DNA of 64,000 nt from Blastocladiella emersonii ATCC 22665 (Eukaryota; Fungi; Blastocladiomycota): assembly GCA_025594325.1 (NCBI GenBank), contig JANHCV010000001.1:3100001-3164000 (forward strand), read 5' to 3'. The position numbers and the translations under genes were made by a program. Numbering within the stretch: the first letter of the stretch is position 1; each line of letters starts with the position of its first letter. Positions 1,131 through 7,508 of this stretch are shown here, one piece after another. The notes beneath the pieces are model-generated. The model did not search any database. It was not told the DNA's origin and worked only from the letters and a program-made list of their open reading frames with translations.

Positions 1131-1715
1131 ATGGCATCTAGTATTGGCTCCTTGCTACTCTCGCTCACCGGCGGGCTCCTGCTCATCGCGCTCGTCATCG
1201 CTTCCGGTCCGTGCTGACTGGTTGGCTCACGGAAGAAGCACTCGGACCTCATCACTTCCTGCCCGAGTGTAGCGTGGTTTGTCATGTGGAAGCTCATCCT
1301 CAGTCAAATCCCACTCGTGCGAGAGATGGCCGGCCTGCCACCGCTTCCTGTGTCGGCTCGACCACCGCGGAGCAAGCGCGAGCGCTCGGCCGCGCAAGAC
1401 TCTCCGCCCACGCTCCAGTTGTCGCGCTCAACGAGCCGAACCGCTCTCAACCTGCGCGACGTCGCTCCCGCCGCCCCGAGCGGGCAGCCCACTGACATGG
1501 CCGCCTCTATCATGCCCGGGACCCTCAAGCAGTCGGAGAGCATGGACGCCCTCGTCAACAACGCGGGCACAAACGGTCTCGTCATCGAGGACGACCACTT
1601 CGGCGACGGTTCGTCACCCTCGTCGTCGCGCGGCAGCTCGGGCACCCCGGCCGCCGCCGCCAAGCCGCTCAAGTCCATTCTCAAGCAGCGCGGGCCGCGG
1701 CAGCAGGACTCGTGA
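1131..1715 (+). CDS. Small integral membrane protein, SMIM13/DUF4750-like (2 exons; intron 1207-1272)
   Basis: ATG 1131; intron GTCCGT..GCTGAC..GTGTAG. The spliced N-terminus MASSIGSLLLSLTGGLLLIALVIASAWFVMWKLILSQIPLVREMAG resembles the SMIM13 TM segment plus 'W..FLSKFKFLRELVG'. It joins in frame to ORF 1284-1715. Confidence 0.65.
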
Positions 1716-1744
1716 GTGAGTGAGCATGGATTCAATCGAATTGA

Positions 1745-1920
1745 GCACCTGTATGAATGGAGTACACAAAACGCGCAGGCCATCTACATAAGATCTGTCG
1801 ACCACAGACCTGCGACCACATTGGCCGTAACCAATGCGATCGACACCACGAGGGGTCCCGTAGGACCAAAGGCGCAATGAAGCACCCGAGACGCAGGGGC
1901 CCGTCTCACCTCGGGGGGCA
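1745..1920 (-). ncRNA. Candidate Fanzor omegaRNA (scaffold plus guide) downstream of the Fanzor ORF
   Basis: Minus-strand hairpins: GAGACG/CGUCUC (~1888-1907), GGUCC-UACG-GGACC (1854-1867), a 12-bp stem GAUCGCAUUGGU-UACG-GCCAAUGUGGUC (1814-1841), and GCAGGUC/GGCCUGC closing further small stems (~1775-1813). G-U pairs work only on the minus strand, which is the Fanzor sense strand. Boundaries are approximate. Confidence 0.6.
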
Positions 1921-1954
1921 GTGGATTCGTTAGGGGAGCCGTTTGGGAGAGCGG

Positions 1955-2000
1955 GATGAGGAGAGGGAGGGAGGGAGGGAGGGAGGGAGGGGAAGAAGAC
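1955..2000. repeat. (GGGA)n / (TCCC)n low-complexity tract between the Fanzor stop codon and the structured region
   Basis: gaggagagggagggaggggagggagggagggaggggaagaag on the + strand; it fits a G4-type motif. Confidence 0.85.
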
Positions 2001-2010
2001 ACGGATGACC

Positions 2011-3885
2011 TTAGACGACCTGGGCTTGAGCTTGAGCTTGAGCGATTCGAAGGCGATGCGCGTGGATCAGCAGCAGGTTGAAGGCGGCGTTCTTGTCGCG
2101 GCCGAACGTCGCGCGACACCGCGGGCAGTGCTTGGTGCCCCACGGCGTGCGCGGGCCCGTCTCGAGGTCGCACTCGCCGTCGGCGCGCTGCTGCGGCGTG
2201 GAGAGCGCGGAGCAGACGGCGCACCGCTTCGACGTGTAGTTTTCGTCGACGCGGGCGATCTTGGTGCCACGGCGCACGAGCTGGTCGACGAGCTTGGCAA
2301 CAGGACCACGACGATGAACACGAACGCCGCCGTAGTGGAACTGGTGGCCGATCAGGACGTAGGCGCCCTTGAACGCGTGCGTGAGCTTGTCGAACATCTT
2401 CTGCGCGAGCCCGAACGTGAAGAACCCGAGCCGGCCGACGCGCGTGCGCCGCACCTCGGTCAGCGTCGCGGCCTCGGCGGCCGCGTTGGCGTCGATCTTG
2501 GCGTGCAGGTAGGTGGCGGGGTCGGCGGCCGGGTGCGACGCCGCCGAGCGGTCCTCGTCGTGGTCGTCGAGGCCGTACTCGGCGCGCCACATGCGCGAGC
2601 GACTCGACTTGAGGCGGGCGCCCGTCTTGTGGTTGAACTCGTACACCGTGATCTGGTCGAAGCGGTGGTTGATGCCCTCGTTGGTCATGGCGATATCGAG
2701 CAGGATCAGGCGCACCGCGTCAAGCTCGGCGGCGCGAGCGTCGTCGTCGAGCGTGCCGTCGGCGTGGATCATGGCGATGCGCTCGAGGACGGCGACAATG
2801 TAGAAGAACAGGACGAGCGCGACCGTGAACGCCGTGATGGGCGAGTTGGCGCCGGGGTCCACGAAGGTGATGCGGTCGATGCCCTCGGCCACGTCGATGT
2901 CGCCAGCGTGGATGTCGGTACCGGCGCCGCGGCGACGAGCAACGCGATGATCAGGAGGGTGGGAGATGACGAGAGGTGGGTCATTATGGGCGACAACAGG
3001 AGGTTCGGGAGGAGATTCGAGTGCGAGAGCGAGGTGCTCGGCGGACGAGAGTGCATGAGTAGAAGGCGTAGACCGGGCGCGCTCGCACGGGTAGATGCCG
3101 TCGCGGTAAATGGGGACGCGGGCCGAGTACCCGTCCGTCTTGATGGACCCAATGAACTGGTTGACGGGCTGCGCGCCGGGTTGAAGGCGCCAGCACAGCA
3201 AGTGCTTGACGTACATGGACGACCAGTGCAACAGGTAGTCCCAGTAGGCCTTGGCGGTGCGGCCGTCCTGGAGCTCGTACGCGGCGACGCGGACACGAGC
3301 GGCGGCGACTGCGACAGGATCATCGTCTGCGGCGATGATGTCGTAGTCAGCGACAGGATGATCGGGCCAATCCATCCCCCGCGTCGGCGATGTCGGATCC
3401 CGGCTCTCGTAGGCCGGCATGCCGGCCACGGCCATGAGCGTCCACCTCGAGCTTGGGGACCATGCGCGGGCGCGGCGTCGAGGCCGACACGAGCTCGCGG
3501 TCGACAAAGTAGTCGCGGGCACGTTGAAGACGAACGAGGCGGTCGAGCCACGACAGGCCCTGGACGTCGATCTCGGCGTAGGCGCGGACACGGCGCTTGG
3601 CCATGCGGACGCGCGCCTCGCGCTCGGCCTTGGAGACCTGGAGCTCGCGCGGCAGGCGGCGCGGCATCGTCTCAACGGCCACCGCGGCGCGACGATCCGC
3701 CCAGAACGCCGTCGAGTTGGCCGCCTTGCGGGCAGCGGCGCGCGCGCGCGGTGACGGGTGAGGACGAGGGCCGCCACGGCCGGGCGCGTCGAGTACGGGT
3801 TCGGGAACCGGCGCCTGCGCCTGCGCCTGCGCGCGGCGCTCGTGGCCGGCGGTCTTGGCGGCGCGACGACGACGAGCACGGAGCG
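2011..3885 (-). CDS. Fanzor1 (TnpB-family RuvC RNA-guided endonuclease); the N-terminal part lies in a different frame (frameshift or intron near 3440)
   Basis: Motifs: FIGSIKTDGYSARV (Fanzor1 WED-type TDG motif, ~3130-3155); RuvC-I ITFVDPG (D 2857-2859); YVLIG (Gly at the canonical Glu site); rearranged RuvC-II VDENYTSKRC (E 2242-2244); zinc finger CAVC..CPRC; RuvC-III RDKNAAFNL (D 2095-2097); TAA at 2011. The in-frame ATG at 3435 gives 474 aa. Coding-like codon usage continues upstream in the 3347-3985 frame. Confidence 0.88.
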   Translation of the reverse strand, partial: RSVLVVVAPPRPPATSAARRRRRRRRFPNPYSTRPAVAALVLTRHRARAPLPARRPTRRRSGRIVAPRWPLRRCRAACRASSRSPRPSARRASAWPSAVSAPTPRSTSRACRGSTASFVFNVPATTLSTASSCRPRRRARAWSPSSRWTLMAVAGMPAYESRDPTSPTRGMDWPDHPVADYDIIAADDDPVAVAAARVRVAAYELQDGRTAKAYWDYLLHWSSMYVKHLLCWRLQPGAQPVNQFIGSIKTDGYSARVPIYRDGIYPCERARSTPSTHALSSAEHLALALESPPEPPVVAHNDPPLVISHPPDHRVARRRGAGTDIHAGDIDVAEGIDRITFVDPGANSPITAFTVALVLFFYIVAVLERIAMIHADGTLDDDARAAELDAVRLILLDIAMTNEGINHRFDQITVYEFNHKTGARLKSSRSRMWRAEYGLDDHDEDRSAASHPAADPATYLHAKIDANAAAEAATLTEVRRTRVGRLGFFTFGLAQKMFDKLTHAFKGAYVLIGHQFHYGGVRVHRRGPVAKLVDQLVRRGTKIARVDENYTSKRCAVCSALSTPQQRADGECDLETGPRTPWGTKHCPRCRATFGRDKNAAFNLLLIHAHRLRIAQAQAQAQVV

Positions 3886-5030
3886 TAGCTCGGCGTCCAG
3901 TCGAGCCCGTGCTCGTGCGCGATCCCCGCCCACCGCGGGCCCCAAGCGCGGGCCGCGTCGCGCGTGAGCAGGCGGCCGTCGGCAAACAGCGACACCTCGA
4001 CGCGGTGCGGCGGGCGCGTCGACTTGACGTCGGCGACCTCGGTCAAGAACGACGCGATGCGCTGGTGCACGCGCCGCGTGTCAGGGTGCCCGATCGCGAC
4101 GAGCGGGAAGACGTGAGGTTGGTCGACGAAGAGATCGTGCACCACGACCGAGGCGCGGCCGTGGTCGACGAACCGCGCGAGCTTGGCCGCGAACCGCACG
4201 TTGTCGTCCAGCAGCCGCTCGTCGGTGCCCGTCGACAGGTACACGGGCGGCCACGGGACACGCGCGCTGCCGCGGTCGAGGACCGGGCTGACCATGTGGT
4301 GCGTGGCCGCGATGCGCACCGTCTCTGGCCCGTGCTGGTCGCGGCCGACGTAGTAGTCGTACGCGCCCACGCCGTCGGGCCCGTTGCCCAGACTCGACTC
4401 GGACGGAGACACGACCACGTCGTACGGGTTGTCTTACGCGCTCGGGTTCTTGAACGTCAAGTCCGTCCACGGCGAGATGCCGACCACGCCCGCGGGCATC
4501 GGGTGGCCCTGCTCGCGCAGGAAGATGGTCGCCGAGAGCACCAAGTTGCCACCGGCCGAGTCGCCCATGAACACGATGCGGGACGCGGGGATCTGCTCGA
4601 CGTGCAGGAGGTAGAGGTACGCCGACGCGACGTCGTGGACTGCATCGGGGAAGACGTGCTCGGGCGCGAGGCGGTACTCGCTACGCCGTGAAGCGTCAGT
4701 TTCCTGCCGAGTCGTTGAAGGAGAGAGCGAGCGAGCGTACACGTTGAAGAAACGGCGACGACACAGCGCGGCCAGCTGCGCGGCAATCGGCGTGTATGCG
4801 GCCTTGCTGCCAAAGAGAAACGCGCCGCCGTGGACAAAGAGCACGACGCGGTCGCTGTCGATGGTCGGCGGCACGACCCAGTCGGCGCGCATCGTCCACG
4901 ACCGGATGCTCGGCACGTGCGAGTAGGCGCCCGGCTTGGCTGACAGCGGGCGTCAAGCAAGTCGAAGCGCGCACCGAGGCGCCCGTTTGAGACGCGAAGC
5001 GCCCGGCACGTGTGAGGTGGCGCGACGCGT
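3885..5030 (-). pseudogene. Alpha/beta hydrolase (HSL/abhydrolase_3 family), truncated and with a premature stop
   Basis: Motifs VVLFVHGGAF, EYRLAPE, GDSAGGNL, SPWTDL and HVFP. Introns at ~4682-4740 and ~4939-4974. In-frame TAA at 4434-4436 (NPSA*DNPYD). No ATG-bearing 5' exon was found, and similarity ends at ~3885. Confidence 0.8.
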
Positions 5031-6931: not shown

Positions 6932-6976
6932 CCGCTGAAGTACGAAGCTAACTCAACCATTGCTGTAGCGCTCGCA
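6932..6976 (+). repeat. Degenerate ~45-bp direct repeat, copy 1 (branch point plus 3' splice site)
   Basis: ccgctgaagtacgaagctaactcaaccattgctgtagcgctcgca; matches 7644-7689. Confidence 0.85.
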
Positions 6977-7508
6977 TGTATTCCCTATAGCTGCGATGGG
7001 ACACCCCGACACGTAGCGCGTGCACCAGAGGCTCGCCTCGTTCGTGCGCGAGATCGCCGACGTGCAGTCCTCGCGGCCGCCGTATCGCGTCGAGGTGTCG
7101 CTGTACTCGAACGGCAAGCTCGTCTCGCGCGACGCCGCCAAGTTCTGGGGCCCGCGCTGGGCGGGCGTCTCGTCGACCGACAACCTCGCGTGGACGCCCA
7201 ACCACGTGCGCGCATCGGCCGGACTCGTCCTGTCTGAGCCGCCGAGCCTCGACGCGTCGTCCGCGGCCATGGTCATGGCCACCGTGGTCAATTCCTCGCC
7301 AGCGATGGCCGAGACTGATCCGTCGTCCGTCGCGTCGGCCAGCGACGCGGTTCCCGTCGCCATGGACGACATGCAGCGCATGACGCGGCTCCAGCGTCGC
7401 TCGGTCGCGGATATCAAGAAGGCCGTTGCGTCGGTCCAGCGTACCTCGTCTTTTTTGGTCGCGCAGCGCCGCGCTTCTCAGTCGGAGACGGCGGCCACCA
7501 TGGCGTAG
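6969..7508 (+). pseudogene. 3' fragment of a paralogous alpha/beta hydrolase, inverted relative to the 3885-5030 copy
   Basis: HVFPIAAMGHPDT*RVHQRLASFVREIADVQSSRPPYRVEVSLYSNGKLVSRDAAKFWGPRWAG aligns with HVFPLVAIGHPDTRRVHQRIASFLTEVADVKSTRPPHRVEVSLFADG of the first copy. In-frame TAG at ~7014-7016; no upstream exons. Confidence 0.85.

Follow-up and report, generated by a model that had tools for sequence, protein, structure and literature searches.

A 5′-truncated, frameshifted copy of a Fanzor1 element in Blastocladiella emersonii

The window analysed here is a 64-kb stretch of the genome of Blastocladiella emersonii ATCC 22665 (assembly GCA_025594325.1), and all coordinates are given within it unless another locus is named. 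On its minus strand lies a copy of a Fanzor element whose open reading frame (ORF) an earlier note, made from the sequence alone, had taken for a Fanzor1 RNA-guided nuclease with an intact catalytic triad. The copy was compared with its paralogs in the same genome, above all with a locus here called L001, and with the structurally characterized Fanzor1 of Spizellomyces punctatus (SpuFz1). It belongs to the Fanzor1 family, has lost the 5′ part of its gene, and carries a frameshifting 29-bp deletion directly upstream of the ORF. The locus and its surroundings are laid out as follows.

1750–3886, minus strand: Fanzor element copy (the repeat unit), 2.14 kb, with a paralogous locus on contig JANHCV010000003
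1750–1916, minus strand: conserved structured 3′ tail of 167 nt, next to the unit’s right end; candidate scaffold of an omegaRNA
2011–3435, minus strand: 474-codon ORF of Fanzor1 type, with the distal part of WED, a low-complexity linker, RuvC and the zinc finger (TNB)
2083–2244, minus strand: region from E398 to RDKNAA, with the alternative catalytic Glu, the zinc finger and RuvC-III; the SpuFz1 counterparts of E398 and D447 in the alignment are E541 and D606
2338–2352, minus strand: IGHQF, with Gly363 at the canonical RuvC-II Glu site, aligned with SpuFz1 G505
2686–2817, minus strand: predicted helical hairpin between RuvC strands 2 and 3, specific to the Blastocladiella paralogs
2851–2859, minus strand: RuvC-I DPG (residues 193–195), with the D193 codon at 2859–2857 aligned with SpuFz1 D383
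2926–3087, minus strand: low-complexity linker ahead of RuvC-I, the second half of which (DPPLV..PP.HRV.RRRGAG) is kept in paralogs
3130–3138, minus strand: TDG motif of the WED strands (residues 100–102), nearly invariant in the family and also found in SpuFz1
3442–3443, minus strand: site of the 29-bp deletion, seen in pairwise alignment with L001; frameshift, with loss of RGRFFNVPFK from a conserved motif
3443–3667, minus strand: N-terminal coding fragment in another frame, from an ATG at 3667, homologous to residues 1–75 of the L001 ORF
3668–3886, minus strand: Arg/Pro-rich coding remnant that extends to the unit’s 5′ edge and has its homologue in an internal stretch of the paralog P0003
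3885–4892, minus strand: remnant of an Abhydrolase_3 (alpha/beta-hydrolase) gene, which adjoins the element and is fused to Fanzor in GenBank

From its ATG at 3435 to a stop codon at 2011–2013 the ORF runs through 474 codons without interruption, as the earlier note had reported. The length itself is little evidence, because local G+C is 69% and the opposite strand holds a shadow ORF of 627 codons; it is homology to relatives that marks the minus strand as the coding one. The motifs that had been listed for the ORF (TDG, DPG, the Gly, the rearranged Glu, CxxC..CxxC and RDxNAA) are all present where they were placed, the RuvC-I Asp that had been assigned to the codon at 2857 is D193, and a low-complexity linker does precede RuvC-I. 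E398 stands six residues ahead of the first cysteine pair (E398-NYTSKR-C405AVC, 2244–2212), the second pair follows as C437PRC (2127–2116) across a spacer of 28 residues, and R446 and D447 open the RDKNAA motif at 2100–2083.

Several searches bear on the assignment to Fanzor1, which the earlier note had proposed. Pfam PF07282 (Cas12f1-like TNB) matches residues 554–624 of a longer, 644-codon reading with E 3.4e-9, above the gathering score, and an NCBIfam TnpB subfamily model matches the ORF weakly. Searched against the PDB by phmmer as a single sequence, the ORF gave no match at E up to 1, SpuFz1 included, and a profile of four sequences found only Cas12f, at E 0.09. With a profile of 43 family members (463 positions), the best match is SpuFz1 itself (8gkh, E 2.9e-40, 373 of the 463 positions), followed by the Parasitella Fanzor1 PpFz1 (9cf0, E 1.5e-29, two matched stretches) and the Guillardia Fanzor1 GtFz1 (9cer, E 3.3e-25, 375 of the 463 positions). 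The match to a mimivirus Fanzor2 (9b0l, E 2.1e-11) is limited to the zinc-finger region, as are those to TnpB and Cas12f in various PDB entries (E 1e-9 or weaker). In the alignment to 8gkh, which is numbered as a maltose-binding protein fusion with an offset of 394, SpuFz1 D383, G505, E541 and D606 correspond to window D193, G363, E398 and D447. SpuFz1 D383, E541 and D606 bind metal and are catalytic in the solved structures (PMC10432273, PMC11423790), and a conserved G500/E536 pair has been reported in SPu-1-1p (PMC3627910); the triad is thus intact, as had been claimed.

The residues that have been used to recognize Fanzor proteins (PMC10711439, PMC10530073) are all found in the window ORF: the RuvC-I DPG (193–195), an inert residue where RuvC-II canonically has its Glu (G363) and, six residues ahead of the first CxxC, the alternative Glu (E398-x6-C405). 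The motif of Bao and Jurka, D-X(125,275)-[TS][TS]-X-X-C4-X(5,50)-RD (PMC3627910), is likewise present, with 207 residues between D193 and T401 S402 K R, then CAVC..CPRC and, after 5 residues, R446 D447. The pattern of Yoon et al., DPG-x(120,160)-E-x6-CxxC-x(12,18)-CxxC-x(4,8)-D (PMC10711439), is a search heuristic rather than a definition; its order and anchor residues are there, and two spacings, of 202 and 28 residues, exceed its ranges because the zinc-finger loop is longer and a lineage-specific helical hairpin is inserted.

The structural statements made here are by proxy, from an AlphaFold model of the open, 91%-identical paralog ORF at L001 built with a 43-sequence alignment. The model has a pLDDT score (local confidence) of 75 overall and above 90 across the RuvC/TNB half, and below 50 in the linker before RuvC-I, which is disordered in it. 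Foldseek against the PDB places Fanzor1 structures at ranks 1–6, and VIA-align gives Z 14.8 to 8gkh (model residues 261–553), compared with 11.0 to Fanzor2 and 10.3 to ISDra2 TnpB. The structure-prediction check suggested in the earlier note therefore favours a RuvC/TNB half nearest to SpuFz1, and the label Fanzor1, rather than Fanzor2 or TnpB, is supported by sequence profile and structure match alike.

The same model bears on the hydrophobic helical insertion that had been noticed after RuvC-I. Two amphipathic helices are modelled there with pLDDT above 90 (L001 residues 296–314 and 320–339, equivalent to window residues 207–225 and 231–250). The segment from DPG to HKT(G) measures 70–108 residues in Blastocladiella paralogs and 29–44 residues in most full-length relatives from elsewhere, a few of which are longer; SpuFz1 and PpFz1 have gaps at the hairpin in the profile alignment. 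The insertion is real, and as modelled it is a lineage-specific hairpin common to the Blastocladiella paralogs and not a membrane segment.

The extent of the element is set by comparison with L001, where window 1750–3886 aligns to L001:5791–7946 with 91% identity over 2178 aligned bases, beyond which the sequences on either side are unrelated. Unitigs from genomic DNA have loose ends at 1750 and 3886 that continue into the flanks of the L001 paralog. Comparison of these two copies of the subfamily revealed no terminal inverted repeats (TIRs) and no target-site duplications (TSDs) at the ends so defined, and no transposase was found within 10 kb of the window copy, within 6–10 kb at the four loci examined, or as a domain of the long paralogs. 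Ordinary host genes make up the neighbourhood out to 10 kb (an RNA-recognition-motif (RRM) protein, Med31, an acyl-CoA dehydrogenase and DUF4750), the three paralog loci likewise sit among ordinary host genes, and no further pieces of Fanzor were found elsewhere in the 64 kb. The earlier suggestion of a stand-alone element with neither transposase nor TIR/TSD is thereby borne out.

An intact gene, which the earlier note had implied, is not what the unit contains. In terms of the family protein, the ATG at 3435 stands for a Met in the interior (the next in-frame Met past the break, within LMAVAG in paralogs), and N-terminal coding sequence continues upstream of it in another frame. By tblastn, this N-terminal fragment is 86% identical to residues 1–82 of the L001 ORF. 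The 29 missing bases are not a multiple of three, and therefore the part from the ATG at 3667 to 3443 is now out of frame with the rest; its frame ends after the deletion at a stop at 3347–3349, within an ORF spanning 3347–3985. The deletion falls in a motif of the approximate form hydrophobic-s-l-l-P-x5-k-h-i-x-i-d-x-x-x-L, here called the ‘lP’ motif, which L001 and two further paralogous loci (L002 and L003) encode, as do distant metagenomic relatives and SpuFz1 (there as QRFSAIPLRRSLIQSHVRIDTIIL). Because the motif occurs across all of these, the difference is a deletion in the window copy rather than an insertion in L001.

The loss at the 5′ end of the unit is larger. Residues 158–315 of P0003 match window 3838–3410, and residues 1–157, which hold a block common to the paralog P0002 (LAE.LV.QE.K...Y.LDWW.ERHP), have no counterpart anywhere in the window. 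Since the Arg/Pro-rich remnant matches internal residues of P0003 and the first 157 are absent, the unit is 5′-truncated. Full-length relatives have the ‘lP’ motif at residue 180–460, SpuFz1 has it at about residue 264 and the L001 ORF at 71, and the window ORF begins after it; the 474 residues therefore correspond to roughly two thirds of a Fanzor1, on the C-terminal side. In SpuFz1, the part ahead of this motif includes the REC residues that read the target-adjacent motif (TAM) and hold the guide–target heteroduplex (PMC10432273). A complete Fanzor1, in which an N-terminal WED/REC lobe, RuvC and TNB share a single frame, is not present in the window copy.

The window copy is a member of a family that is divergent and lineage-expanded in B. 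emersonii. Word-indexed protein searches returned Blastocladiella proteins only, the nearest of which all come from B. emersonii ATCC 22665 and are annotated as ‘hypothetical proteins’, and a profile run exhaustively against 1.84 billion representatives yielded just 49 proteins at E ≤0.001. Twenty of the 49 were looked up: the ten best and two weaker ones are Blastocladiella paralogs, and the other eight come from short metagenomic contigs. At least 15 annotated B. emersonii paralogs carry PF07282 or match the profile.

The closest paralogs are themselves damaged. L002 and L003 are 87.6% identical to one another and each about 68% identical to the window copy, and both have frame changes in the N-terminal third. 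The frame shifts of the three copies fall at different sites (residues 86, ~131 and 151 in L001 ORF numbering); a conserved small intron was considered as the source of these changes and rejected, given that the positions differ and leave no room for an intron. L001 has an uninterrupted ORF of 561 codons (L001:6001–7686) in which near-invariant positions are altered (TDG to MDW, IGHQF to TGHQF, and N to T in RDxNAAxN). The ratio of nonsynonymous to synonymous substitution (dN/dS, Nei–Gojobori) is 0.64 between the window copy and L001 (Fisher p 0.04), 0.39 between L002 and L003, and about 0.55 between the subfamilies. Taken together, the damaged paralogs and these ratios describe a family that was formerly under selection and whose present copies are drifting.

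At the other end of the unit, the 3′ tail is predicted to fold into several hairpins with a minimum free energy of -77.6 kcal/mol (z -5.18, a value that no shuffle out of 200 equalled). Between this tail and that of L001 identity is about 95%, and the copies diverge directly past the stop codon, the most diverged part of the element being a low-complexity (CCCT)n run at 1956–1999 between stop codon and tail. Relative to L001 there is one compensatory change (C-G to U-A) and two that are wobble-compatible, with no predicted pair broken. As far as a comparison of two sequences goes, position and predicted structure would suit an omegaRNA scaffold whose guide starts in the flank below 1750. No Rfam family matches the tail, and the 3′ tail of the L002/L003 subfamily, unlike that of the window copy, has no significant structure (z -0.29) and bears no resemblance to it. 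A sub-threshold Rfam match to a miRNA at 3860–3906, near the opposite end of the unit, was dismissed as chance (24 bits against a gathering score of 80).

These observations are most probably explained by a dead or dying, 5′-truncated and frameshifted copy of a solo Fanzor1 element, neither working nor domesticated. The ancestral element would have encoded a protein of roughly 600–750 residues comprising an N-terminal lobe, WED, RuvC with its rearranged Glu and the zinc-finger (TNB) domain. Behind the coding part would have come a structured 3′ RNA, in an active element the omegaRNA scaffold, with a guide taken from the flank past the right end. The copy at 1750–3886 may have arrived or been duplicated without its first 150–300 codons, coming to lie against the 3′ part of an alpha/beta-hydrolase gene. 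A later loss of 29 bp at 3442/3443 would then have removed the strand motif and shifted the frame, leaving open the C-terminal two thirds from an internal Met, which is the 474-codon ORF. D193, E398 and D447 and both CxxC pairs would survive because the decay is recent, and not because a working protein maintains them.

Some of the evidence weighs against decay and has to be set beside it. The 474 C-terminal codons are free of stops, with every catalytic and zinc-binding residue kept; translation may start at the ATG at 3435, or a spliced product may be made. A dN/dS below 1 means that part of the divergence happened under constraint, and where replacements can be polarised with outgroups, 16 derived ones fall in L001 and 9 in the window copy, so that the latter more often kept the ancestral residue. 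The deleted segment was modelled with pLDDT below 50, so that it is conservation which speaks for a structural role. It might accordingly be proposed that the 474-residue ORF still functions as an RNA-guided nuclease with a reduced N terminus, whether as a compact Fanzor or after domestication by the host. In favour of this one could point to the same open frame, intact D/E/D triad and dN/dS below 1, to the well-modelled RuvC/TNB half of the 91%-identical paralog and to the conserved structured tail after the ORF. Such an ORF would, however, start past a motif that all full-length relatives and SpuFz1 keep, and would do without the 180–460 residues that precede that motif elsewhere and among which the REC residues of SpuFz1 are found (PMC10432273). 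Its start arises from the 29-bp deletion and not from a conserved gene structure, no orthologous truncated form was seen, and a dN/dS of 0.64 indicates weak constraint. A working or domesticated nuclease, as entertained in the earlier note, is thus unsupported in view of the 5′ truncation, the deletion and the damaged closest paralogs, and we regard it as improbable.

The GenBank annotation offers a different account, in which hydrolase and Fanzor form one spliced, chimeric and domesticated gene (H9P43_001163; P0067, 866 aa). The protein does map to window 4892–2014 on the minus strand in five blocks, and one of the gaps, of 105 nt, has GT..AG ends. But the first ‘intron’ is 31 nt long and lies exactly over the element boundary, another of 87 nt skips a premature stop in the hydrolase, and the 105-nt one bridges the 29-bp frameshift and discards residues that the paralogs encode and conserve, among which T18, R19, P27, D30 and Y31 are invariant. 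All three alter the frame, in the manner of frameshift patches introduced by a gene finder, and homology between the hydrolase and a second fragment in the window ends at the edge of the element. H9P43_001163 is better read as a chimeric model that patches over a stop and frameshifts, and a genuine fusion seems very unlikely. Least credible of all is that the frameshift is an assembly error and the real locus open like the 561-codon ORF of L001. Two copies with 91% identity could mislead an assembler, and the short reads may be those behind the assembly. Yet unitigs from three short-read DNA runs of one sample cover 3224–3472 in the deleted form with zero differences; they stop exactly 30 bases past the junction, as expected of a 31-mer graph at a branch with the paralog, and the undeleted form is seen apart from them, in a loose end at 3443 that reads the 29 bp of the paralog. 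As the runs are possibly the assembly’s own data, this agreement speaks for consistency and is not independent proof. The unit would in any case still be 5′-truncated if the 29 bp were restored, and a decaying copy remains the preferred account of the locus.

Relative to characterized systems, the window family shares with SpuFz1, PpFz1 and GtFz1 the DPG, the RuvC-II Gly, the alternative Glu six residues before CxxC, the C4 zinc finger, RDxNAA and the TDG and ‘lP’ motifs in WED, and the window element ends 3′ in a tail of predicted RNA-like structure. The family differs from them in an identity of ~16% over the aligned structure and in the 40–75-residue hairpin and 28-residue zinc-finger spacer of the Blastocladiella side, while the window copy itself also lacks the N-terminal REC lobe, is frameshifted, and has no TIR, TSD or partner transposase that could be found. 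Carriage by a eukaryotic transposon, recognizable by TIRs/TSDs or by a partner transposase (Mariner, Helitron, IS4, Sola, MuDR and others), which is one criterion for Fanzor1, is not seen for the window copy. With Fanzor2 and IS607-type TnpB (ApmFz2, 9B0L) it has in common the rearranged Glu, the zinc-finger/RuvC-III region and a TnpB-only organization devoid of TIRs and TSDs; unlike Fanzor2, the protein family is larger and has WED motifs of Fanzor1 type, and no IS607 serine recombinase lies nearby. The AMa elements of Allomyces macrogynus (PMC3627910), compared here by description, belong to the same phylum, Blastocladiomycota, and the same protein class, and the window ORF shows the Bao and Jurka motif. 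Because the AMa families were recorded in 2013 (PMC3627910), Fanzor1 in Blastocladiomycota is not new; in the literature searched, no paper paired Fanzor with Blastocladiella.

Fanzor1 proteins attract attention both as compact eukaryotic genome editors and for what they say about the persistence of TnpB-like genes in eukaryotes. The window copy adds little itself, since it is truncated and frameshifted and the occurrence of Fanzor1 in the phylum has been on record since 2013. Its use is that H9P43_001163 is seen to be chimeric and should be split, that together with L001 it gives the exact ends of the element and supplies a very divergent and lineage-expanded clade of Fanzor1 with a candidate omegaRNA, and that it documents this clade as ‘solo’ and largely decaying in the B. 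emersonii genome. It is conceivable, if rather doubtful, that the Blastocladiella paralogs form a separate, lineage-expanded subclade of Fanzor1, characterized by the hairpin in RuvC-I and a long zinc-finger loop, whose solo elements spread by an undescribed route. This might be nuclease-assisted homing or a copy-out that truncates 5′ ends, for example, and in that event the damaged window copy would help to define the element ends and the omegaRNA. Less likely still would be expression of the truncated ORF, or of the hydrolase fusion, and its co-option for a new role.

Some minor observations concern the surroundings of the element and its copies. The window holds two diverged C-terminal fragments of the hydrolase, inverted relative to one another and 74% identical (3884–4115 and 6975–7206). 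Homology between them breaks off at 3884, which is two bases short of the element’s 5′ edge, and never resumes: neither a continuation of the hydrolase below 1750 nor an empty site in the second fragment was found. The break fits insertion of the element into the 3′ end of the hydrolase, or replacement of that end by the element. In the L001 paralog, the element’s terminal CATTCATAC recurs 10 nt inside the 3′ flank (L001:7930–7966), which could be due to chance or to a preference in target sites. Another Fanzor fragment, more diverged (L003:9313–9943, 69% identical to L002:7103–7705) lies ~400 bp downstream of the P0003 gene, and relics therefore stand in tandem at the L003 locus.

Within window 1500–4500, unitigs also have loose ends leading into unrelated sequence at 2022, 2086, 2247, 2486, 2765, 3014 and 3864, and the summed word depth within the element is 2–4x that of unique flank. 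The internal loose ends and the raised depth suggest more truncated copies of the subfamily elsewhere in the genome. Differences between window 1750–3886 and L001:5791–7946 are mostly CpG transitions (G>A 34 against A>G 10, binomial p 0.0006), with 48 sites that are CpG in the window but TpG or CpA in L001 and 14 in the reverse direction. This bias resembles deamination of methylated cytosine, chiefly in L001, and hints at silencing of the L001 element by 5-methylcytosine.

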